DNA of 64,000 bases from Klebsormidium nitens (GCA_000708835.1 DF237044.1:62001-126000), one strand, 5' to 3'. Positions 28,301-43,193 are shown, numbered from the stretch's first letter. The notes: generated by a model not told the origin, from the letters alone. Numbers and translations: made by a program.

Positions 28301-30159
28301 TCTCTATCGATGGAAAGATTGCAGCATGGTTCAAACGTAGATTGTGCAAGTTCGGACTGATGCGTATTGAATCTGTAGTGTCTTTCAATGTTTCAGTGCG
28401 GATCTGCGAGGCAGTACCCGGCAAACCCTCAAACCTTCCGAAATTCTGTGCTTCCCAGGGAAAAGCCTGGGGCACTTCCCATTCCGTCCCCATCAAGTCC
28501 CCGGTCTGGGGTCCCCGGCCTGACACAGGGCGCCTTGGCTTCGAACAGGAACGGAACCGGGGCGGAACCACAGCATTTCGCTCCGGAAAGGTGCTAGGCG
28601 GACGAACCGGAGCTGGGCCCCGGTTCAAGGCCGGTTCAAAGAGGACAAGAACCGGTTTATGAGGACCGGCTCTCAGAAAATCTGAAAGTCGATTTTGAAG
28701 AGAGTAAACAGCATTTGATTGGGGCAAGTTGGTCACCGGCCTTGCGCCGAGTGAGGAACACTGGCATCCCGAAACTTGGAAGCAACAGCGTAATACATGT
28801 GTACGATGCGATCGCTACTTGAGGTCCATGTAAGCGTGACAATTTTTGTAGCATAGAAGCATACTTCGCGATAATTCCGTCCCCGCCGCATCCCTACAGC
28901 GCCCGGCAGCATGCCGAGCACGTGGCTTGGCGCGCGCAGGCGCGGGACGCTCTGTCCGTCTGGCGTCGGCGGCGGATGCCTACACAAGCCTTTGATGCAG
29001 TACCTGTGTATTACAGACGTTTTGGTAATGCACATCCGGACTCATTTCGAAGCCACTCGTGTAAGAGGCAAGAATGTATGGAACAGGCCGGGCTGTCTTC
29101 ATCGATTACTAGCGCCGCCATGCAACTGTGCATCCATTTCAAGGTACGTTAAGTTACTGTGCCACGGCAAAGTCGACGTGCGCGATAGAATTACTGACGT
29201 AGTAGCTGCGCTCAGCTCGATGCACGTATGCACCACGATTGTCAACATTCGGACTGATTCCCTGGCCTTAATTCACGAAGACGCCAAGCAGCGACGGTGA
29301 TTTCTAATCTGCTAACTAACCGTCCGATACAGATATCCGACTGAGTAAAAGCAGGCAGCATATGATACAAGGAACTGCTATCCTACGTCGTCTCCAAGCA
29401 CAAGAGCGGTGTTAAAATACGAGGTCCTGCACAGGCTCGTGATACAAAGACAGGTTCCATTCGTGTCGAAGACTTCGGTCGACGACGTCTTGGCTTCTTC
29501 CTGGATCTACCGCGCTAGCATGGCCGACGTCTGCAACCGCCAGGTACGGGTAAGCTACTCTCACGATAGTCCCGTTGGCTGCAAACAGAGCAGAGAAGTG
29601 CTTTAGTTATTCCAACTAAACTTGTGAAACCTTTGACAAGAGGCTTTCAGTTTCACCGGAAGGTTCGTCTTCTAACCGGGCTAATCACTAGATTTGATTT
29701 GTGTCTGGTTATTGGAAAGAGAACCGGGCTTAAAGAACCGGGCTTCTCCGAAGGCTGGTCACCGCCCTTGGTTACTGGACCTTCAACCAGTGCACAACAG
29801 CCTGGTAAGGGCCAAAACCTCCTATGCTTTCGCAGCCCCAGGTCAAAAGACCCCACAAATCATCCTATGTACCGGTCCCCCCCCTCCCAAATAATCAGAC
29901 GCTGCAGAAAATCTCAGCAATAAAATCGCGTCCATTAAGATACCAATCTCGACGAGAACTCCTTACTGAAGTGAACTGTTGTTTTTGTCACGAGCGAAGC
30001 GCAAGTTGCGCACGTGGCTGCAAAGTTCACACTGACAAATGGTCCGGCAAAGTTCGACGCAGCGCTAGGCATCAGGTCTTTGATGCTTCTGCGATTCTGC
30101 TGTATGATGAGCACGTGCCCGAAAGCGCAATCAAGCTCGACAGCTCAAGAAAGAAGGCA

Positions 30160-31881
30160 TCAGAGTGGGAACAGATCACACAATGTATCGAAATCATCTG
30201 ACAATCCTGGCAGTCGACCCATCTGACCTCCGTCCGTGGTACCCAAATTTTCCATATAGAAAGCAATTGTGGCGGAAAGCTCACCCGCTAGATGTTGATA
30301 CACGTGATCGTACGGCTCTTTTCGACTCGAAAGCTGAACGCTTATCCACCGCAGTATACTTTCATAAGTGTCTCGGTGATACATTGTGGCGAAAGTGCCA
30401 CACGTGTGTAGATTTGCATTGTAGCAGCGGGCTGCCGATGCGTCGTATACCCTCGTGTCGACTTCGTCTCGAATCCAGTTCCAAGCATCGAGGGACCATT
30501 CTGTTGCCCCGAGCAACAACACGCCACCACTGCAAAAGTGAACGTGAAGGGTCGGCCAAGAATGCAGAAGTTTCTATCGGAAGACGGCCAGAAAGACAGC
30601 CAATGGATCTGACTTGCATGCGAATAGGCTCCTGTGAAGATAGACGGAGACGAGATTGTTTGAAACTTTGAAACTTCATGGAGCTTATTGAATAGTACGC
30701 GAGGGTTTTGAGCGAGCACTTGAATTCGTCTAGAGAGAACTGGGAGGCGAAAGCGTCCAAAGACGGCGCAGTAAAGCGTTGAACCGAGAACTCCCCGGTT
30801 CACCACCTACAAAGAAAGTCAACATTCACGAGTGAATGCCCTTGCCGTCTAGCTGACAACCCTGACATCTACGCAGGACATCGCAAGCATCTAGCGGCAC
30901 CCTTCATCGACTGGAGACCTTCGTGCTCTCACGAAATTCTCTTTAGGATCGGAGAACCCACCTACTGTTTCCTCGTAGGTAGTTGGAGCACCGCGCGCTC
31001 GTTGACAAGAGCTCTTTCAGTTTGTCGCCGAACTGCTTGTGAAGCAGAGCATCGTCCTCGAGTACGAGGACTGCAGGCATCCTCATCTTTTGTGCGTGTA
31101 GAAACAGATCTCGCATGGATGCCAGGAGGCCAAGCTCACCGAGCTTTAGCTTTTTGGTACCTGAAGAGGGTTGTGTTTGATGTGTATCAAATTATAAAAT
31201 CTCGCCGATCCGATTACAGGATATCAAGAAGCTCTGTCTTGAGCTGAGGTCGGAACGGAGAAACTGCCAAGATGTATCAAAAGGGCCTGATCTTTTGGTT
31301 GAAAAGCCTTCTAAAGCTCCTGCAACCTGGCTGCGAGCTTGCACGCTCTCTGCAACCGGGACTGGTTCGCCTCATAACCGTCCTTTGAACTTTCTTGTTG
31401 TGACCTACATGCCTTCTGTTCTGTCTCCAGTTGCCGGTATTGGTAGCTTCTAAAACGTTGAATAGACTTGCCTCGGGCACATCGGGCGGACTTCAATAAA
31501 TACCGGTTCCATGCCCGTGTGGCCAGCGTTTTCAGGACATTGGGGGCATTGCCTCAAATCAGATTAAGGTCAGGCACCTTTCAAGCTACCGCATCCCAAA
31601 GTCAATCATAGCGTGCGGTCTGCGGATGTCTTTGAGGTTGAAGATCTGCAAAGACAGATGTCGAGCAATCCTCTATAGCTGCTCAATTCAATAGCCAGTG
31701 AATCGTGTACACCTTCACAGCAATCATCTCAGGACACAGCGCTTGCAACAATCTAAAAGGTTGTCTTACCGCCCTTCCATATATTCGCCCTCCGGAAGGC
31801 CTTGGAGCCATTCACACCGAACCATGGGAACGCAGTCAGACCATACAGCCGGCATATTCGAGCTAGGCCTTCCCACCGCCT
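30160..31881 (-). CDS. GT25-like glycosyltransferase exons (31881-31770, 31160-30962, 30529-30160); possibly the C-terminal module of the upstream GT gene
   Basis: Phase-compatible GT-AG exons give RRWEGLARICRLYGLTAFPWFGVNG…G|TKKLKLGELGLLASMRDLFLHAQKMRMPAVLVLEDDALLHKQF…S|GGVLLLGATEW…TCGTFATMYHRDTYESIL…EPYDHVYQHL. This matches the recalled GT25 pattern (RF.AVDG; GE.G...S; LILEDD; LLLG; T.AY). The upstream exon was not resolved. Confidence 0.7.
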
Positions 31882-32630
31882 CTGCAACATGACAAACGTC
31901 AATCAGCAAAATTGGTTATGATGTTCTCTAGTCACTTGCATCAAACTCTCGTTGCTGCTTGTGTAAGTACGGCCAGTTCACTAAGATTCGTCTTTAACAT
32001 TCCCAGTTACGTCAATGTATGCGCGTTTGGTGAATATCGGTTGTGATGGCTAGCTCGCTGTTTGGGGCCAGACGTCAGCCGTTTTGGGAAGCAGTTTTCA
32101 AGCACGAGAAAGTATCAGAGGCACGGAGGCTTTCACGAATTTGCATTGGAGCAGACGTACTTACAACAGACTGTGACAAACATGTTATCCTCCTAGACGG
32201 ATAATGTAACCGTTGTTCCAACTGGGATCAATTCAGGCAGATCAGTTCCACTTGGGAGCCTTTTCATAAATCAAGTAAAGGGCGAGAGTCTAATTTAAAA
32301 GGAGGAATGACAAAGAATCAGCCAACAGGCCAAACTGATATTGTCGCAAGTCAGTGTTTGCAGCAGGACAAGAGTTTCCTAGGGTAACCGACATATTGAG
32401 TAGGAATGGATCGATTGTTAGGTTGTGTATAAGATCCAGATTTCAAACTGCTCACGAAGCACCATATAAGAGTGCTTATGATTGGCACTACCAACCAACC
32501 GCCCCTGTCCAAATAAGCCGCTCTTGCGGAAAGCTGCATACACTCTGAAACGCACGTTAAGCATTTTTCAAATAACAATTGATGAGAAACATGGCATACT
32601 ACAAGGACGGGTTCTTATGCACGAAGCTTC

Positions 32631-33801
32631 TTAAAGAGGACCTGAATTGGGGGGCGGCTTATGGAGATTGGAGCGGGACTCTACCTGTCCTGGCAGCGTT
32701 AGGATGAAAACGCTGAGGTTGTCAAGGAACTTCTCCGGTGACACGACGGGGTTTTCAGAAGGGCACTCGCGTAACTCAATTGGAAGTTCTTTCCGGAACC
32801 ATGGCCCGTATCCGTGTTCCGCCATCCAGCGTTGGGTGGTCAATAGCGGGTTGCTGTAGCACTGGCCACTGCCAGACTTTGCGGAAGAGACTGCTGGGTT
32901 CTGAGAACCAAGCGGTGGGTCTATTGTTGATTGCCTATCGGTGACAGGAGCTTCAGCGTCTAGGCGGACTTCCACTCGCGTAAGTGCTTTCCTGTATACT
33001 AGATCTTCGAGCTGCTCCGCAAGTAAGGAGCTGGGTTGGACAGAAGGGGCAACGGCTTCCAGGGTGTAAATTTTGTACAGCTTTTGTAGCGCTCCGAGCA
33101 CTTCAATCGGGAGTCGGCTTTCCGGAAATGCTAAGAACACTGTTCGACCCTCCTTGATCTCAGGCTTGACTGCGGTAAAAACTGTTTGCACCAAAGATTC
33201 CAGCACTCCCTCTGAAGAAGACGAGTTAGCAACCGTGCGGTTGACCGCGACTTTCACTGCGTCGTAGTAACCGACTTCTTTTCTGAACGACTCGTACAGC
33301 TGATGCAGCTTGTGTGACGCCGTTAGCGAGACCACTTGTTTGTCGATCCTAAGCCCATAAGGAACGCCTTCTAGCAGCTCGACCCCCTGGAAGCAGAAAG
33401 CTTGGCAGAACGCTTCGACCGCTTCTCCAAGCGTATGACGGCTCGAGTTGCCAAGAGCGAACCGCCGGACGAGAACGCGGTCGTGCTTCGCCTTTGACGC
33501 ATCGTTTGTGTCCGCAAAAGCGCCTTGCTCGTTGAATCCAAAGACCTTGGCGGGCCCCCGTAGGAGTCTCGCCCACTCCGCAGAGTCGCTCTCGGTCGCA
33601 TCAAACCGCGCCCTTGCTTCTTGTATGTCGAAAAGCTGATGAATGGACACGTGTCCACCATTTTCTTCCAGGATCAGGGCCGGAACAACAAGGATACGCT
33701 GGAGAACACGCGCTTCGCGCAAGGCACACGTGAGGGCCAGTCTTAGGGCCTTGTATCCGCCACACGATGCGATGCTCTCAACGCCTTCCCAACTCAGGTA
33801 C
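32631..33801 (-). CDS. Large exon encoding an O-fucosyltransferase-like (GT-B, SUB1/POFUT-like) domain
   Basis: Acceptor ccgcggcAG at 33804-33802. The frame YLSWEGVESIASCGGYKALRLALTCALREARVLQRILVVP continues into the 363-aa ORF 33722-32631 and resembles the 'C..AL.EA..L.R.LV.P' N-terminal motif of O-FucT-like proteins. The donor at the 3' end was not pinned down. Confidence 0.5.
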
Positions 33802-34330
33802 CTGCCGCGGACAAGGAGAGGGCGTGAGCACGGGAGACCTAGATATGCCAGTGGTCAGCGAAAGGGGTCTGCTGAGACGAAATTTTCTGGCTGGCCTCCA
33901 TCACTGCGAATCCAAACATTTTCCCTAAGTCATCAATTATAACGATCAAGAACTTAGCTTGGACTTTCTCGAGGCTGAAGTACCGCTGTGGCAACGTGGC
34001 CTTGAATGTCTGGCGCCTTTCGTATCTACCCTCTTTTGAAGCAGCAAATAAGAATCGAATTGCAGCTGCAAACATTGTTAGACAATCAGCACTTCAGATT
34101 GCGCACGGCACAGGTCTGCCTCTGATTATACTTCCAAATTGAAAGACGACCAATCAGCTGAAAACTTTCTACGCGCTCTCATTCGGAACAAAGTGCTTGT
34201 ACCAGGCCTCAAGTCGGCTCTCTCTGACTTGTTAATCTGCGCCAGACGTCCATTTTTGGAACTTCCGTAGTCACCGAAGTGACCAGGCTCATAAGGAGTT
34301 TAGAAGGAACGTAACGCCAGAAGTCCTTAC

Positions 34331-37300
34331 CTCCGTTGAGCTTTCGCAGCTTCGACCTGTTTGACTATCGACTGCATGTGGTTTGGCAAAGACCTCAGCC
34401 CGCGCACTTTGACCGGGTGCAGAGCGATGGCGTCCAAATGTATTTTCTCCAGCACCGTCGGTAACAGGATCTGCCTGTCCACTTTCCAAGCGCTCTTGAA
34501 GCGGGCCTTCATCTCATTTTCTGAGAACGGCTCAGATCTGCAAGCCACGCCAACGTGCTTGGTGATGCAGCGGCCGACTTCGACGTCCGAGTGCCAGCTA
34601 GACCACTCGACCGCGCACTGGCTTATGTGCGGTCCCAGTTTTTGGAGCGCCGCTCTATTGAGGACATAGGCAGGTCCGCCGACGCAATATGGTAGAAGCT
34701 CCCCATGCCTGGCAGGAAAATGTAAGAATCATCGGGAAAACGTCGAGCTCTACTTTCTTCCAGAAGGCGGCAGCTTTCTGACGGCAACGGCGTGGTTTTG
34801 GATCTTCCAACTTCCAATTGAGCAGCTTTGCTGCGACGAATCGTTGATCGTTGCTCCAGTGTTTCCGCATTGCTTTGTAAAACCTAACCGCAACGGGAGG
34901 TGGTCTAGTGTCGATCGTTGAAGACAATATAAATCAGCACAAGCCCTTCAATTTTGTCAATGAATCTTGCAGACCGAGCCTCACAAAGTCTGCCGCTGTC
35001 AAAAACAACCAACGAGGATCTGAGAGCCAAAAGCAGATCTCGCCCCAGATCCATCAAGAAGGTGCCAAAAACGTGGGATCCAGATTGGTTTGCTAACCCG
35101 TGTCTTTGCTTGTCCACTCGCTGCTAGCTGCTTCAAAGGACAAACGCTGAGGCCAATCTTCCATTATAACATCTTCGCTTTTTCGGAAAAAGACGCCTCA
35201 CTTTCCCTTCTTAACATTCAAAGGTCGACCTTGCGGATCGAATTGCGCTCCGGTTGTTGGCCCGCCAAGGTACAAAGGTCCGGCGGCTCTTTCCGACAGA
35301 GCAAAGCCGCGTAAAAAATCCCAAAGACGCTCGAAGTCGACATATGCGTCGTCGTCCAGATGCATAAACCTGCATGCAAAAGGTCAAAGTCTGCCGTTCA
35401 ATTCCAAGTGCAATGCAAACGGGTTTGCTGCTGCTCGGACGCAACTTGACGGAAAGCTCAGATATTGGCAGGCCGGAGTACAAAGCTGGTGATCAGGTTG
35501 TTGAAAAAGAATAACCTGTTGATGCGTTACGTGCTCCTTGCAAGGGGTGCTCACTGCCTGGCTGAGCAATCTGACTTTGACGAGAACGTTGACGTCCAGC
35601 AGTGACAGATCAAAGCCTCTTTTGCGGCCGATCTTCAAAAAAAAGAGTGCTGTACGTGGAGCCCTTAAAACCATACGCAAATTAGAGGGAGGGCGCTCAC
35701 CAGTCATACTCAAGGGCATGATGCTCGTACATGTACCGCCACATCGCAAGATCTTTCAGACGAGGCGGATAGTTGTCCCTGCAAAGTAAAAACTTCTTTA
35801 CAGGGATTGCAAAATGTACTTATTACAACGGCAACAAAGTCAGAAGCTTGACTGATTTTAACCACACAGCAGAACCTCACCTTGTTTACGTATTGCAAAT
35901 CATTTCGCAGTCACAAAATGAGTGCGTTCCTCGATCACCGATTAAGCTTGAACGGAAAGAACAATGGAGAAGCATCATCGTGGAATCCGAATAAGCATTT
36001 GACTGCCTTGCTCCAGATTGCATGAGATTGCGCGAGACCCTGCTTTTGCTCGTAACCAAACCACCGAAAAATATGGTGACAATGCACTTGCCTAGCTTAA
36101 GTTTGATTCCGTTGCCTGAGGCACTATAGAAATGCTGTATTCCACAGTTCGTTACGACGCAGTTCGTTACGAGAAATGGTCACAAGAACGGCTCCGATAT
36201 CCACTGCTCTCCTTCTTCCCCATCTTGTAGCTCTTGAGAGGGCCACCACCAAGCACAGTCTAACGATTGGATGCTCCTCTGAAACGGCTTGTTGCTTTAC
36301 GAACACTGTTCCTTCGAAAGACGGCAAAAGCTGGAAACCATTTGTACTTAGTCTGATGATCTGAGCTGCAGTCGCCTCCTACCTTGTCAGACAATTCTAT
36401 TTTGTCAGCAATCACCATTTGACCGCGCAACGAGACCCAAACGCTGTCGGAAGACAAGAAGAGACTCACTCCACATCAAGCCACACAAGCGGAAGGCCTC
36501 CATATTCAGCCGCACGTGCTTCTGCAACCTCCTTTCTGGTGCTGTTGCCAACGAACAGGAACAGTTTGGCCTGGTCACCCAGGCTTGCAAATAGAGGCAC
36601 AACTCTGGACCGGAGTTGGTGATGACTAGCCTTGGAAAGGACGCCGACAATCAAAGACGGCTTAGAGAACTTAGGCTCCTCCAGCTGCATCGCCTTGACC
36701 TTAAGCATCTGCAACAAAGAATACTGCAGTGGTTCAGGATGGACATTCCGTTTTGCTGATGGTCTGGTGGTAGTAAGAAAATTTAGCCCAAGGAGAGACT
36801 CACTCCACATCAAGCCAAACAAGCAGAAGGCCTCCATATATGGCTGCACATGCTTTCAGATGCAACCTCCTTGCCGGTGTTGTTGCCAACAAGCAGGATC
36901 ATTCTGGTCTGGTCATCCAGGCTTGCCAACAGAGGCACAGCTCCGGATCAGACTGTAATGATGACTAACCTTGGAAAGGACGCCACTAATGAAAGACGGC
37001 CCCGACAACTTAGGCGCTTCCTGTTGCATCGCTTTGATCCTGCGCACCTGTGACAAAGAATAATGCAAAGTTCAGCTGATCACGGAGATTCCGTTTGGTT
37101 GAGGGCCTGGTAAGGAAATTTGACATTGATTGTGTGCTACCAATAGCTATGCTGAACCTTGTAGGCTACCGCATAGCTGATGCAGATCTTGCAGCTGCAA
37201 GAGCTTTTTATCCTTCTTGAGGATTTCAAAGTAATAGCACTCAAGCCCTGAGGTGAACAGAAGCTTACATGTCTTGACAGCGATACTGCTGAGCAAAGGC

Positions 37301-38343
37301 TAATATCTGCTTGTGCATTGTCCCAGAATCTCTGACAGGGTAGCATCTATAAGAGTCAAATCTTGATGGATGACCTTATGCAGCAACTTGCAGAACTCAA
37401 TCAAAACTGTGCTGGTTTATCAAGGAACGTCTGCCTCGAGACCAGATTGATGCTTGAAAGAAGTTGGTGAAGTGAGTAATTTTGTGTCACGGACATCCAG
37501 AGCCATAAAGCTTCCGGTCAGCGAAGCTTCTGATTGCTGAACACAGGCGGTAATCAGTACTCTTCACAGTAAATGGACACCCACCCAGCAAACCCATGAA
37601 CAAAGTGAGGGCGGATGTGTTGCAAGTATCACCTGCTGATTGAGCAGTTCCGCTGGCGAGCGCAATTGCAGGTAAAGAGCGTTGAAAGCAACTGCTAACT
37701 TCTCACGTCCTGCATTCCTGAATGCGAGCCCAGACCAAAATCGATCCTCGAAGCTCCCAAAGGGCACCGTGTGTAGCGCCCCTCTTCTATGCAGCTCTTT
37801 CAGCTGAGTGGTCCGTTTTCCATCAATTGAAACAAGGTGCAGCTGCAGCGAGCTAGGAAAGCGCTCGCTCGCGAGCTGCAGGTGGATTGCGATGAAGTCT
37901 CCTAAGACGTCTTCACTTTTGAAAATGAGCCTGGACTGCCCTGGAATCTCAAAACTGGAGTTGGTGTTCCAGTCTGAAGTAGCTGAAGAGAGCATCTCCG
38001 TTGCTTCTGCCAAGCTTGAGGTCCCATTTGCTAGAATCCAGCTCCAATCAGCAGGTAAAAGGCACCCGCTTTTGACTATCCAGTGCTCCGTGGGATTTTG
38101 AATTGAGAACAAAGATTGGCAATCTGGTTGCTGCTTGCTGCTGAATCCGTCTAAGAGGTTGGGTGGTTCATTGCTGAGCTGAGGTCTCGGCTCGGTTCTC
38201 AATTGCCACTGTATAAGAGAAAGGGCAACACATGAAGCCAACAACAGAAGGATCATCAAGAGCAACCTAGAGGAAAAGCCCTCCAGGGCGAACGCCCCGG
38301 ATTTGCGTCTCATGCTTGCATGCCACACCAAGTCTGACAGCAT
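34331..38343 (-). CDS. GT31 Fringe/chondroitin-synthase-like glycosyltransferase, type II membrane protein (exons 38343-37633, 36708-36470, 35778-35701, 35369-35202, 34708-34408 or -34331)
   Basis: All junctions are GT-AG and phase-compatible (0,2,2,2). The N-terminal hydrophobic anchor is followed by EDNYPPRLKDLAMWRYMYEHHALEYDW|FMHLDDDAYV…LYLGG…|…PYCVGGPAYVLNRAALQKLGPHISQCAVEWSSWHSDVEVGRCITKHVGVAC, with the DxD motif intact. Confidence 0.88.
36804..37047 (-). pseudogene. Frameshifted tandem duplicate of exon 2 of the minus-strand GT31 gene (pseudo-exon)
   Basis: Intact acceptor (tgtcacAG) and donor (GTGAGT). It is 244 nt versus 239 nt for the in-frame copy and has an in-frame TGA after VRRIKAMQQEAPKLSGPSFISGVLSKVSHH. 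Confidence 0.8.
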
Positions 38344-38814: not shown

Positions 38815-41800
38815 ATGGGGCAGGCGCGCTTTTCCGGCCAACTGCAGCTCGCGCTCCTCCTGGCGTTCTCCTTACTCGTCCTCTTCGAAACCGCCAGCTT
38901 TCGCACGCCGGTCTGCCTGGTTGCCAAGTGCGACGTGTCAGATACCAGCCTCGACCAGGACTCCCCAGAAAATGTAGTAGGCAACGAGAACAGCATCAGC
39001 GTGTTGACTAGCGATGGGCATCTTTCTGAAGGGTGGTTTGCGGACCTGCAAGATCTGCGGGGGGTTGCGCGGAAGCCTACGGAACTTGGGGGGTGGGCAG
39101 AGGCACATGCTGGAACTGGGAATCAGAGCAGTATTGGATCAGGGTTCAAAATCTCGGACGGTGCCCGGTTATGGCTCAAGAGCAGCGTCGCATTTGCAAC
39201 TCCTCGTGCAATCGAAATCGAGACACTTGGAAACCAGGCAGGGAGTCTGGAGCTGACACTACTCACGCTCGATGGGGGCCACGAGCACTCTGTCCAGGTG
39301 AATGCGTCAAACGGTACTGTTGAGGAAGCTGGGTCAGCGGTTTTTGTGGTGGATCTTAGTGGGGCGCAGTTTCTACTCTGGCAGTCGATTGAGGTAGGGA
39401 GCACTAGGACCGGCCCGCTTTACCTGAGGAGTGTCCAGATTGACTACCCCAGCTCCAGCGAGCTGCTACAAGAGCAGGTGCGGTGTACTTGCATTCAATT
39501 CTATTCTGAGATTGATTGGAAACGCGGGACAGAGGTCACCAGAAGTGCGAGGTGTTTGAATGCTGCCCTGCGCCACAGCCAGCCAGGCTTTTGAACTCAA
39601 GGGGGTGGAGTCTGCTTTGAATTGCAAGCTTGAAATGATTGAGTGTGAGTCTCTCCAGAATTGGTGCGACCTTAAGGAAGGGTGAGGACAGACTGATTTG
39701 AAAGTGATGGGTGGCCATTTTGTTAAGGAACTCAAGTTTGGTGGTTTGATAAATGAATGAGCTTACAGACTAGCTTGGAGCTGCTGCCGCTTGCAAGGAT
39801 ACTTTTGCAAGGAGAAATTCAGACTTATATATATAGATATCTGTGCATTGAAAAACTTGAGCTGAGCTTAGTCTTTTAAGACTGAAGGCTCAACTCCTGA
39901 CAGTAGGACTCCAGGCTGACATGTCAACACCCCCTTCGAGCTGGCACAAGAGCAGTGTGTTCATCGATCAATCAAAACCAGATCTAAGAAGAGAAGTGAC
40001 TAGATTTTGAGGGCGCGTTGCCAGTGGAATAAGAATGAAGTCCTTTCCAACAAGGACGTTCGCGATGCTTGCCATTCTCAAAATTTAACATGAGGAAGTG
40101 ACATCCGAAGTGGATCCCCGCTTCCACTATCCCCCCACTGAACCGAACTGGAAAAAGCTCGCTCACTTGAATCTGACAACCATCATCACAGGTGGAGCGG
40201 ATCAGAGCCGCGTCACCCGTTCTTCCCTCGACTCGGACGGCAGAACCCCAGGGCCCCTCGGTTCTCGTTTCCCTCTCGTCACTTGCGGAAGAGAGCCACT
40301 TACAAAGGCGACTGGTACCGCTGATCTCGGTCCTCGCCGGAGAAGTGGATCTTCTCGTCTTTGTGGGGAACAACACCGGAGAAGCGGAGGCGGAGGCGCT
40401 CGCTCAGAAGTATGGAGGCCTCCCGTTGAAGTGGAGGAATGTGAGGTGGGCCTGACAGTCTTTTAGGAGCTGACGTGGCGGAGTTGGGAGAAAGTGTGTG
40501 ATGAAGCCCAAACCACGTGTCCCGTATTCTACAGGGAGCTGGGCCTGCCGTTGCGTCTGTTCGTTAGGCGACAGTGATTGCATAAGAGGCCCGAATCGTA
40601 ACATCTCGTTGACCTGAGGATTGTTGCGGGAAATGGATGAAGTGCTTGCTACGTCCACACGTCGGAGAATACAAAGTCTGGAGTATTCTTCGGGGAGCTT
40701 GTTCAGAGTTCCTCTAACTTTCTCAATCTTGAACAGCACCGCAAGCGACAAGGCCGGGATTTACCTCTCGCCAGCCAAGCAATAGGCGCGTTGTAAAGCC
40801 TGTTGCAGGAAATCATATTCGACTGACCCGATTATGGAGCTTTGAAGCCTTTCCTTCGTATCCTGAGGTTACATTTCGAGCCACGTGACGTACGAGTCGG
40901 AGCGAGGGCACTCACTTGGTGACGTCAGCCGCACTCATTACTTTTTTTTGCCTGCAGTGACGCGTACCCCCCCCGGCTGAAGGAGTTCGACAGCTGGCAG
41001 TATGTCTACGAGCACCACGTGGCCGACTATGACTGGTGAGCAGAACGCATTGCTTCCCGGGCTTTTGCCGCTATTGCCACTCCCTTGCTGGTTGAAAGTC
41101 TGTGAAATGTCGCTTCGTCTTCTCGAGGCTATTGCCGGGATTTTCTGCCCCAGTCCGGCAGTCGGTCGGTCCGGGAAGGGAAATCGACTGCAGACCTGCG
41201 GAGCAAAGAAGCAAGAGAACCGTTCTTTGGTTTTTGTCAACTACACATGTCGCAAGTACCAAGTTCAGGAAGGATTGGACAAGCAGGGAATCAGTAGCTG
41301 GCTTGAGGCAAGTTGTAAATTCTCGGCGCTTCTTAGTACCGTTGTGCACTTTATTTGTGAAGCTGGAAACAATCGCGGCTGCTTGCTCGTTCATACAAAT
41401 TGCGACAATAGTGCGGTGCTCCCTCTGTCATTGATTACCTGAATGTCACGTCCAACCCCTGTCGCGATGTTGCTCCAAGCGTCTTGCAAAGTAGGAAGCT
41501 AAAAAAGATGTCACTCAAAAGTGAACTCTCGAAAATTGGTATCATTAGAATCCTCCTTGTCGCTATGGAGGCCAAGGCGAGATGGTTGCTCGGGAAGCCA
41601 TAGAGCAATTGACCCCCATTTCTCTTCGAACCGCTACTGATTTTTTTTTCGTAGTCCCCGGTAAAGGACAGCCGTTGTCAGAGACGTTGTGATAAAGTGG
41701 TATAATCAGTTTGTCCCTAATTTAAAATCGATTTTGGCGCGTTCTCTGCCCAATTGACGGCACGTGCCAAACACCCCGAACTGTGTCACTCAAGGCCGCT

Positions 41801-43193
41801 CCATTTCAGTTCCCCCTCCTTCCAAGCACAAGCTCGTACAGCGTCGCAAAGCCCCGGAGAATAGTCCCAATCCGCCTCTGTGATTTCAAAGCGCGTCTGA
41901 TGCTGAAGTTGCCACGTGGCGCTCCCAGGTTCCTCCACATGGACGACGACACGTTCCTGAACGTGGCCAATTTGAGGGCATTTCTCGAGAGCGCATCAGT
42001 TAAAGTACAGAACGAGTCCGAGCCCCTATACATCGGCTCGCCGGGCTTCGGAAGACGACCCACTTCAACGGCCGCCCGCTTGACCTGCCCGTTGGAAGGT
42101 GGGTCCTTCCGTTTCCGTTCTTCCGGTTCCGGCCGCTTCTGACGGCCGCATTCCGCATCACCTCAAATATAAGCGCCAGGGTCCATTTCAAGTTGCTACG
42201 GTTCAAGACTCGTCTCAAAGACGCAAAGAGGAGATCTTTGTGAAAAGTCTACTGTTCGCTTCCTTTTAGACTGCACTCGCACGAGTAGGTTCTGCTCAGA
42301 GTCGCACGTACTGTATTCCCCCGCTTGAGAACTTGACTCTATTCTCAAATTCTGCTCTGTGCCTTGGCAATAACGAGCAAGCTCCCCCCCGCTACCAAAG
42401 AGGCAAAGCTTGGCAGGAATGGGAAAAGAGCATTTTTTTTCGAGAGCTGTAGTCTGGGTCGAACAGGAAACTCCGCCAGGACATTCCGTCCGGTCAGATC
42501 CGTCGAAGGCCAACGGAGCGATCAGCGAATTCTGTATTTCCTCTGCTCTGCCCGAACGGATCGCCGAATAACGCCGCCTCTTGGCACAACTTTAGAGCAC
42601 TATTTCTCCTAGCCTGGTTCAAACGACAGCCTACGATCCGCAACGTCGTCCGCGGATAAGTGACGTGAGGGTTGTAGCCACGTGGCATTGCGTGGTTGGT
42701 CGGGAGGCCCCTTTCTGACTTTCCCTGTCAAGCCCAGCTTCTCTCTCCCCTTAACGAATTCCAAAATTGGGAGATTACGAGCAATAAAGGTCAGCCGGTG
42801 ATCCTACTTTTTTTTCTCTGCAGCGATGGGCAGATCCTGCCGTATTGCATGGGCGGCCCGGGTTACCTGCTGAACCGCCCGGCGCTGACGCGGCTAGGTC
42901 CGCAGTTCGACACGTGTCTCCGAGAGTGGTCCAGCGAGCTGTCGGACACCGAGTTTGGCCGGTGCGTACATAAGCACCTCGGCGTATCATGCGCACTCGG
43001 AAATAGCACGACGCAGGAGCTGCGCGGTCATTTCAGACACCTGTATGATAAACCCTTTGCGCGCGCGGCGAATCTGCAGCACTTTGCGCTGCTATCGAAA
43101 GCCGTTTCGCTGCACTCGATAAAGTTGGACGACGGGGCGACAATGGCGAACCATATGGAGGTCGTGAAGCGACTTGCAGAAAACGTGCTCTAA
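38815..43193 (+). CDS. GT31 Fringe/chondroitin-synthase-like glycosyltransferase paralog (exons 38815-39477, 40192-40445, 40958-41035, 41929-42098, 42824-43193) with an apparent 1-nt deletion in exon 4
   Basis: Signal/TM anchor, then SDAYPPRLKEFDSWQYVYEHHVADYDW|FLHMDDDTFLNV…PLYIGSPGFG…|DGQILPYCMGGPGYLLNRPALTRLGPQFDTCLREWSSELSDTEFGRCVHKHLGVSC. Exon boundaries match the minus paralog, and exon 3 is 78 nt in both. Exon 4 is 170 nt where 171 is needed. Confidence 0.85.

Follow-up and report, generated by a model that had tools for sequence, protein, structure and literature searches.

The locus and its gene model

We analyzed a window of 64,000 nucleotides from the alga Klebsormidium nitens (GCA_000708835.1 DF237044.1:62001-126000), the minus strand of which carries a candidate three-module glycosyltransferase (GT) gene; positions are counted from the first letter of the window. 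The DNA is intron-rich and eukaryotic, with ~50% G+C. An original prediction had described three GT-like coding blocks in series on the minus strand, labeled GT31, O-fucosyltransferase (O-FucT)-like and GT25-like, with a start codon and a membrane anchor in the first block only. Open frames, with Pfam matches for GT31 and GT25, bear out this arrangement: the first block has its ATG at 38343 and a predicted helix at residues 23-49, in an ATG-started frame with a hydrophobic anchor (38343-37567), and the middle block lies in a 407-codon frame without an ATG (33854-32634).

Exon edges were set by conservation against related loci, after which every GT and AG was listed with its phase, and this listing gave a single consistent model. 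Its 10 exons span 38343 to 29412 on the minus strand, with a coding sequence of 3414 nt (1137 codons plus a TAA) and no internal stops. All nine introns are GT-AG, with lengths of 331-924 nt, and every splice phase fits along the series 0,2,2,2,2,0,1,2,1. The stretch is very probably one intact 10-exon gene, predicted to encode a single membrane-anchored protein with three GT folds. The proposal of a fused gene behind one anchor is thus supported by intron phases, conserved junctions and synteny.

The synteny comes from five relatives of the middle block, the only ones found among 5.8e9 + 1.84e9 proteins (63, 59, 39, 28 and 25% identity), all of them single-exon open reading frame (ORF) calls on metagenome or read-assembly contigs. 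In all five the last GT31 exon lies ~350-780 nt upstream on the same strand, and GT25 exons come next wherever the contig continues. The middle block is never free-standing, with no relative lacking an upstream GT31. Because the same order, which the original prediction had suggested seeking elsewhere, recurs in all five independent related loci as far as the contigs reach, the arrangement is more than chance. Two metagenome locus scans returned no further loci. The six loci, the window included, fall into three identity groups (the window with L001 and L007; L003-L004; L005 with L006), and one metagenome sample carries one locus from each group. It therefore appears that the three-module architecture is older than a three-fold duplication in this lineage.

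Exon 1 (37633-38343; 237 codons from the ATG; donor CAG/GTGATA, phase 0, splice points being marked here by a slash) would encode a short cytosolic tail, the membrane anchor at residues 23-49 (~38197-38277) and a luminal beta sandwich at residues 78-229 (~37657-38112). The GT31 domain starts in exon 2 (36470-36708; ..SLIVGVLS..FVGNST..LVWLDV; acceptor ttgcag/ATG, phase 0; donor GA/GTGAGT, phase 2), which is 85% identical to L001 over 83 amino acids. It continues through exon 3 (35701-35778; DNYPPRLKDLAMW..EYD-W; phase 2 in and out; donor TG/GTGAGC) and exon 4 (35202-35369; donor AA/GTGAGG, phase 2), which holds the GT31 DxD motif HLDDDAYV with its DDD at ~35348-35356. Exon 5 (34331-34708; GGPAYVLN.., HSDVEVGRC and LHPVK; donor AG/GTAAGG, phase 2) ends the domain. 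A proposed intron of 529 nt (33802-34330), mid-range among the introns of the model, separates it from the middle exon b2 (32685-33801; 1 nt plus 372 codons; acceptor cag/G, phase 2; donor CAG/GTAGAG, phase 0).

Four GT25 exons complete the model. The first, g1 (31770-31881; RRWEGLARICRLYGL..WFGVNGSKAF; phase 0 in; donor G/GTAAGA, phase 1), is kept in L001, L003, L005 and L006. It is followed by g2 (30962-31160; phase 1 in and phase 2 out), with VLVLEDDALLH and its EDD at ~31051-31059, and by g3 (30285-30529; GGVLLLGATEW..CYNAN..PYDHVYQHLA; donor G/GTGAGC, phase 1, reading GCGG/GTGAGC at 30285). The gene had been predicted to end at 30160, which does not hold: that stop lies in the intron after the donor at 30285, and a conserved last exon, g4 (29412-29578; ..NGTIVRVAYPYLAVADVGHASAVDP..LYHEPVQDLVF; acceptor ttgcag/CC, phase 1; stop TAA at 29412-29414), lies outside the predicted span. 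This exon is 62-75% identical in L001, L004 and L005.

In L005 (8396-8665) and L006 (599-847) the exon 3/4 intron is absent, with ..DW and FMHLDDD.. contiguous, compared with 35778-35202 in the window. Unlike this intron, the one between GT31 and the middle module is present in all loci.

The GT31 stop lies inside a conserved splice donor

The open GT31 frame runs into a TAA at 34327-34329, which sits inside the phase-2 donor of exon 5. The strong in-frame donor seen here by the original prediction (cggAG/GTAAGG, just before the stop) pairs in phase 2 with the acceptor cag/G at 33801. Splicing 34331^33801 rebuilds an Arg codon (AG+G) followed by YLSWEG, with both sides in phase 2 and the frame kept. 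The internal exons 2, 3 and 4, whose status is not in doubt, likewise have GTGAG donors in phase 2, and reading through each of them gives an immediate in-frame TGA, so the stop after exon 5 is not special.

We compared this junction across the loci. The GT lies exactly 14 codons plus 2 nt past a conserved His-Met in the window, L001, L007, L004, L005 and L006 (25-63% identity), and a YAG acceptor plus one leading base stands directly 5' of YL[SVY]W[ED] in 6/6 loci. The rebuilt split codon is Arg in five loci and Lys in the sixth. Beyond the conserved GT the frame stays open for 3 more codons in L005 and 14 more in L006; since these two frames run past the GT, it is the donor that is conserved and not the stop. 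In a seventh fragment, L008 (83% identity), GTGAGC replaces the GTAAGG of the window, so that the stop changes from TAA to TGA and the donor consensus is kept. The window also holds a control: a plus-strand paralog without downstream modules ends 11 codons past the His-Met, with CTC TAA TGA and no donor, in agreement with the original prediction that this paralog terminates after GT31.

The L008 fragment (L008:225-742) comes from a soil metagenome contig of 742 nt and is the closest relative of the last GT31 exon; the split Arg is kept, and the contig stops short of where any middle module could appear. We also observed that the gene has four successive phase-2 GT[AG]AG donors (36470, 35701, 35202 and 34331), each of which, like any phase-2 GTAAG or GTGAG donor, leads to an immediate in-frame stop on read-through. 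A naive or prokaryote-style gene caller would cut such a gene at every exon, and fusions are thus easily split in annotation. Every database relative that we found is a single-exon fragment.

These data bear on the possibility that two adjacent genes are present, with GT31 ending at the TAA at 34327-34329, a gene for the middle module and GT25 starting in a short exon within the gap, and the pair kept adjacent by block duplication. In favor of two genes, the TAA can serve as a genuine stop, and the GT31-only paralog demonstrates the viability of a protein that terminates near this point. Furthermore, the window has an ATG at 34075, unconserved, with possible phase-2 donors, among them the weak CG/GTACTT, which could in principle start a separate message. 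Against this, the conserved feature at the homologous codon is a donor, not a stop, in 7 sequences, and the gap lacks protein-level conservation: comparison of the 529 nt with all related loci by tblastx revealed no conserved coding sequence. Mini-exons running from an ATG to a phase-2 donor were enumerated in the six gaps; none was conserved, and no mini-exon had both a reasonable donor and a hydrophobic stretch of membrane grade. Ahead of its acceptor, the middle frame lacks an in-frame ATG in 4/6 loci, and in-frame stops occur 6-48 codons upstream. Between L001 and L007 the gaps are 66% identical and measure 432 and 774 nt, whereas synonymous sites of the flanking exon differ by only 16%; because of this disparity we take the gap to behave as unconstrained non-coding DNA. 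With two genes, the 420-774 nt of the gap would also need to accommodate a 3' untranslated region (UTR) and promoter as well as a 5' UTR, first exon and intron, and the second product would lack an anchor or signal sequence. Altogether, we regard two genes as improbable.

In the single-gene model exon 5 joins the middle block directly. The linking exons that had been expected in both gaps are not needed, and the candidate linking frame at 34.07-33.85 kb (MFAAAIRF..) has no match in any related locus.

The middle block appears to continue into GT25

At the second junction the middle exon ends with ..[FY][IV]LTLP[GR]Q, followed at once by GTA, in 6/6 loci. Protein similarity ceases at LTLP[GR]Q/GTA and restarts at a phase-0 acceptor with RRWEGL..YGL..W.GV.G. 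The original prediction had placed this gap at 32631 to 31881; the acceptor at 31881 stands, and the end of the block moves, the true donor (CAG/GTAGAG at 32685) lying 54 nt before the stop. The middle-exon end and exon g1 resemble the opening strand and helix of a GT25 domain. By these features of the sequence, the middle block and GT25 are read as one unit.

Another alternative is three independent genes that merely stand in tandem. The open frames do end in stops, at 34327, 32631 and 30160. However, neither the second nor the third block has a start codon, conserved donors precede the stops at 32631 and 30160 and mark the end of conservation, and the GT25 domain would be divided between two genes. 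We give this arrangement almost no credence.

Domains of exon 1, GT31 and GT25

Database and family searches were run exon by exon. Pfam searches with crude ORFs gave no match, and the exact open frames or exons were required. The most likely domain order is a membrane anchor, a galactose-binding-like beta sandwich, a CHSY-type GT31, a divergent fucosyltransferase-like GT-B module and GT25; these identities are supported by hidden Markov model (HMM) or fold searches only.

For exon 1, an AlphaFold2 (AF2) model built from 5 sequences had a mean pLDDT of 70, with a helix at residues 23-49 and an all-beta region at 78-229 (pLDDT ~85). In Foldseek searches the beta domain matched APC10/DOC, F5/8 type C, CBM29 and CBM32 structures with E-values of 3.5e-5 to 1e-3. 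In total there were 47 matches at E <= 1e-3, all of the jelly-roll class, with TM-scores up to 0.66 of the target. The luminal domain is accordingly modeled as a galactose-binding-like beta sandwich of carbohydrate-binding module (CBM) type. Exon 1 is conserved in L001, L003, L005 and the paralog, all of which end ..ELLxxQ/GT.

The last GT31 exon matches Pfam CHGN with an E-value of 2.1e-9 (37 bits, cutoff 23) and the GT31 domain of human CHSY3 with 4.9e-11 (CHSY3 residues 277-370); the match to CHPF has 7e-5. Because the same exon aligns to CHSY3 277-370, we took the matched first ~80 CHGN positions to be the CHSY GT31 domain. The Pfam Fringe E-value is 8.4e-4 for the DDD exon (profile 90-122) and 0.012 for the last GT31 exon; since the scan took one exon at a time, both scores fall short of the cutoff of 21. 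The window and all related loci carry the motifs HLDDD[AT][YF]V and HSD[VT]E[VI]GRC, and we take the second, by its position, to be the GT31 motif with the catalytic-base Asp. The family HMM match together with the DxD and Asp motifs places this domain in CAZy GT31 (Fringe/CHSY type), consistent with its first label, CHSY/Fringe-like.

Exon g2 matches Pfam PF01755 (Glyco_transf_25) with E-values of 1.3e-6 to 3.6e-6 and 27.4-28.9 bits (cutoff 24) over profile positions 58-116 of 199. The acidic motif, retained in all loci, reads LEDDALLH in the window and L001, FEDDALLH in L004 and FDDDALLH in L005. With an HMM score above the gathering score and an acidic DxD-type motif, the module is assigned to CAZy GT25, as the GT25-like label had proposed. 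The remaining GT25 exons, too short for an HMM score of their own, were assigned by order and conservation. Single GT25 exons searched against the sequences of the Protein Data Bank (PDB) matched no solved structure.

The middle module has a predicted fucosyltransferase-like fold

The middle exon comprises ~300 GT-B-like residues, a conserved linker (C..NP..GY..FR..RECP) and the apparent first GT25 strand (VFILTLPGQ). A profile search of the PDB gave no sequence match for the module. Its AF2 model was used for ranking fold matches only and not for mapping residues. Among 48,161 chains compared by VIA-align, the six highest Z-scores all belonged to fucosyltransferases: NodZ (8.5), POFUT2 (7.7), AtFUT1 (7.4), CePOFUT2 (7.4), FUT8 (7.2) and POFUT1 (6.5), the next chain scoring 4.9. 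FUT8 was also the top Foldseek match of this model, with an E-value of 2e-3. In addition, ESM Atlas features of two members that are 28% identical to each other led to O-FucT clusters, with scores of 0.94 and 0.92, and the N-terminal motif GG..L...L.....A..L.R..V.P is like that of O-FucT families. One member scored 0.075 against DUF7075, which is found alongside O-FucT in one Atlas cluster. We accept the module as a very divergent GT-B fold of fucosyltransferase-like type, as predicted by these models. The earlier O-FucT-like label therefore stands only at the level of predicted fold and falls at the level of the Pfam family.

Membership of the Pfam O-FucT family (PF10250) was considered and rejected, as the HMM fails at E 10.

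Selection was estimated as dN/dS between the window and L001. Every module is under purifying selection, but protein change is uneven along the gene: the GT31 and GT25 exons have values of 0.04-0.15, the beta sandwich ~0.3 and the middle module 0.31, estimates for the middle module overall spanning 0.29-0.35. In fucosyltransferases the Arg of motif I binds the GDP phosphate. The middle module has a sole conserved basic residue at the start of its second half (YD[AS][VF][KR][IV]), Lys in 4/6 members and Arg in 2/6, which on the poor model is at best a tentative equivalent of the motif I Arg.

Besides the ATG at 34075, several of our observations weigh against a single gene for three GT folds. 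No protein spanning either junction was found in two databases, a result that shows only absence from those databases; the searches used the 407-residue frame (which sees proteins of 224-712 residues) and exon 5 (69-219 residues) as queries and included a representative library of all lengths. None of the six middle-module members matches Pfam O-FucT at E-values up to 10. The AF2 model is poor, with a pLDDT of 46 from only six sequences, and the fold call draws on low Z-scores (6.5-8.5) that are notable only as all come from one family, a Z below 8 being possible for a common arrangement. The middle module also changes about twice as fast as the GT31 and GT25 exons, and with the motif I Arg mostly replaced by Lys it may be non-catalytic.

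Some of these observations favor a real fusion that works as a two-enzyme machine, in which GT31 and GT25 would be catalytic and the middle fold an inactive spacer, dimerization or acceptor-holding domain. The module has no Pfam match, the basic residue expected for motif I is Lys in most members, and its dN/dS exceeds that of the GT-A exons by a factor of two to seven; moreover, CHPF in chondroitin synthase complexes is a precedent for non-catalytic GT-like domains (PMC13389171). Against an inactive module, the middle domain keeps an open frame and shows purifying selection across three paralog groups whose identity falls to 25%, with 39 invariant columns, and the Lys/Arg position is never lost, in a motif mapping that depends on a low-confidence model. 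We judge a two-enzyme machine to be plausible, at a little short of an even chance.

Alternatively, all three GT folds might be active. The protein would then be a eukaryotic assembly line on one luminal chain that carries its own carbohydrate-binding module. It would synthesize a repeat with three linkages, or a backbone with a branch, in a wall or mucilage glycan of streptophyte algae, and the middle module would be the founder of a new GT family in the fucosyltransferase GT-B clan. This we consider possible but doubtful. The middle module could represent a new fucosyltransferase-like family, or else a natural case of a GT fold made into a scaffold.

Proposed mechanism and comparison with known systems

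The product of the fused gene would be a type II membrane protein of Golgi style, the catalytic parts of which would face the lumen of the Golgi or endoplasmic reticulum (ER). The GT31 (GT-A, DDD) and GT25 (GT-A, EDD) modules would each transfer one sugar in beta linkage from a UDP-sugar donor, using a metal held by the acidic motif; GT31 and GT25 are both inverting families, and a beta-linked product is suggested because both of these GT-A families invert. The middle GT-B module could add a third sugar or act as a rigid spacer or partner domain, and the N-terminal beta sandwich could hold the growing glycan or the acceptor. Overall, the families point to a possible single-chain, multi-step glycan builder. 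A natural guess for its product is a polysaccharide of the cell wall or mucilage, or else a glycan on glycoproteins.

Multi-module GTs are well known, and they build repeat polymers such as chondroitin, heparan, matriglycan and bacterial O-antigens. Streptophyte algae are not known to make chondroitin. In chondroitin synthase, GT31 and GT7 domains each add one sugar of the repeat (PMC13389171). The animal Golgi enzymes CHSY1/CHSY3 and CHPF resemble the predicted algal protein in being type II proteins with an N-terminal anchor, GT31 and a further GT domain in one chain, and both have a GT31 with a DxD motif and an Asp-containing catalytic-base motif. However, the algal protein lacks the GT7 domain, helix linker and cystatin-like domain of CHSY/CHPF and has instead the fucosyltransferase-like GT-B and GT25 modules, with a beta sandwich taking the position of the disordered stem.

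For an assembly line of three modules, the nearest functional parallel is given by the O-antigen polymerases WbbB (GT99/GT102/GT103) and WbdA of serotype O5 (three mannosyl-GT modules), which carry three GT modules per polypeptide, one per linkage (PMC11231755). These proteins differ from the algal one in being bacterial, cytoplasmic and peripheral to the membrane, in belonging to other GT families and in having, in some cases, coiled-coil rulers, and there is no sequence relationship. In contrast, the algal protein is eukaryotic, predicted to be luminal, anchored and of GT-A + GT-B + GT-A composition.

The middle module has its six best structural matches in the fucosyltransferase superfamily (NodZ and FUT8, GT23; POFUT1, GT65; POFUT2, GT68; plant FUT1, GT37). 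Unlike these enzymes, it mostly has Lys for the motif I Arg and is always embedded between GT31 and GT25, in the six sequences known. The GT25 module resembles the animal collagen galactosyltransferase COLGALT1/GLT25D1 and the bacterial lipopolysaccharide (LPS) beta-1,4-galactosyltransferases in its PF01755 match and (E/D)DD motif. COLGALT1 carries a second GT-like domain N-terminal to its GT25 domain; the N-terminal partner domains of the algal and the known GT25 enzymes differ.

In literature searches we found no description of a chain combining GT31, a fucosyltransferase-like module and GT25, and none of a eukaryotic GT-A/GT-B/GT-A chain behind one anchor with a CBM-like domain. What is new here is the combination of domains and the orphan middle module. 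Streptophyte algae are the lineage from which land plants arose, and the algal fusion, if true, would point to a new streptophyte-algal glycan, for which the gene would be a compact target.

A head-to-head paralog and a decayed copy of exon 2

The GT31-only paralog lies on the plus strand (38815-43193) and has the anchor, the beta sandwich and GT31 with an intact DDD; it ends ..AENVL TAA TGA, and neither a middle nor a GT25 module follows downstream. Its ATG (38815) is 471 bp from that of the three-module gene (38343), and the divergent pair shares the upstream interval. No head-to-head partner was found beside the related loci within the fetched flanks of 5-6 kb. It is pure speculation, by analogy, that the paralog and three-module proteins might pair as CHSY and CHPF do.

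Finally, intron 1 contains a decayed tandem copy of exon 2 and its flanks on the minus strand (36789-37067; 80-88% identical, with spacings of 339/338/334 nt). It was found by a repeat search and alignment, having been missed by Tandem Repeats Finder. The copy keeps the AG acceptor and the GA/GTGAGT donor and carries +1 and +4 indels; because these shift the frame, its inclusion would break the message.

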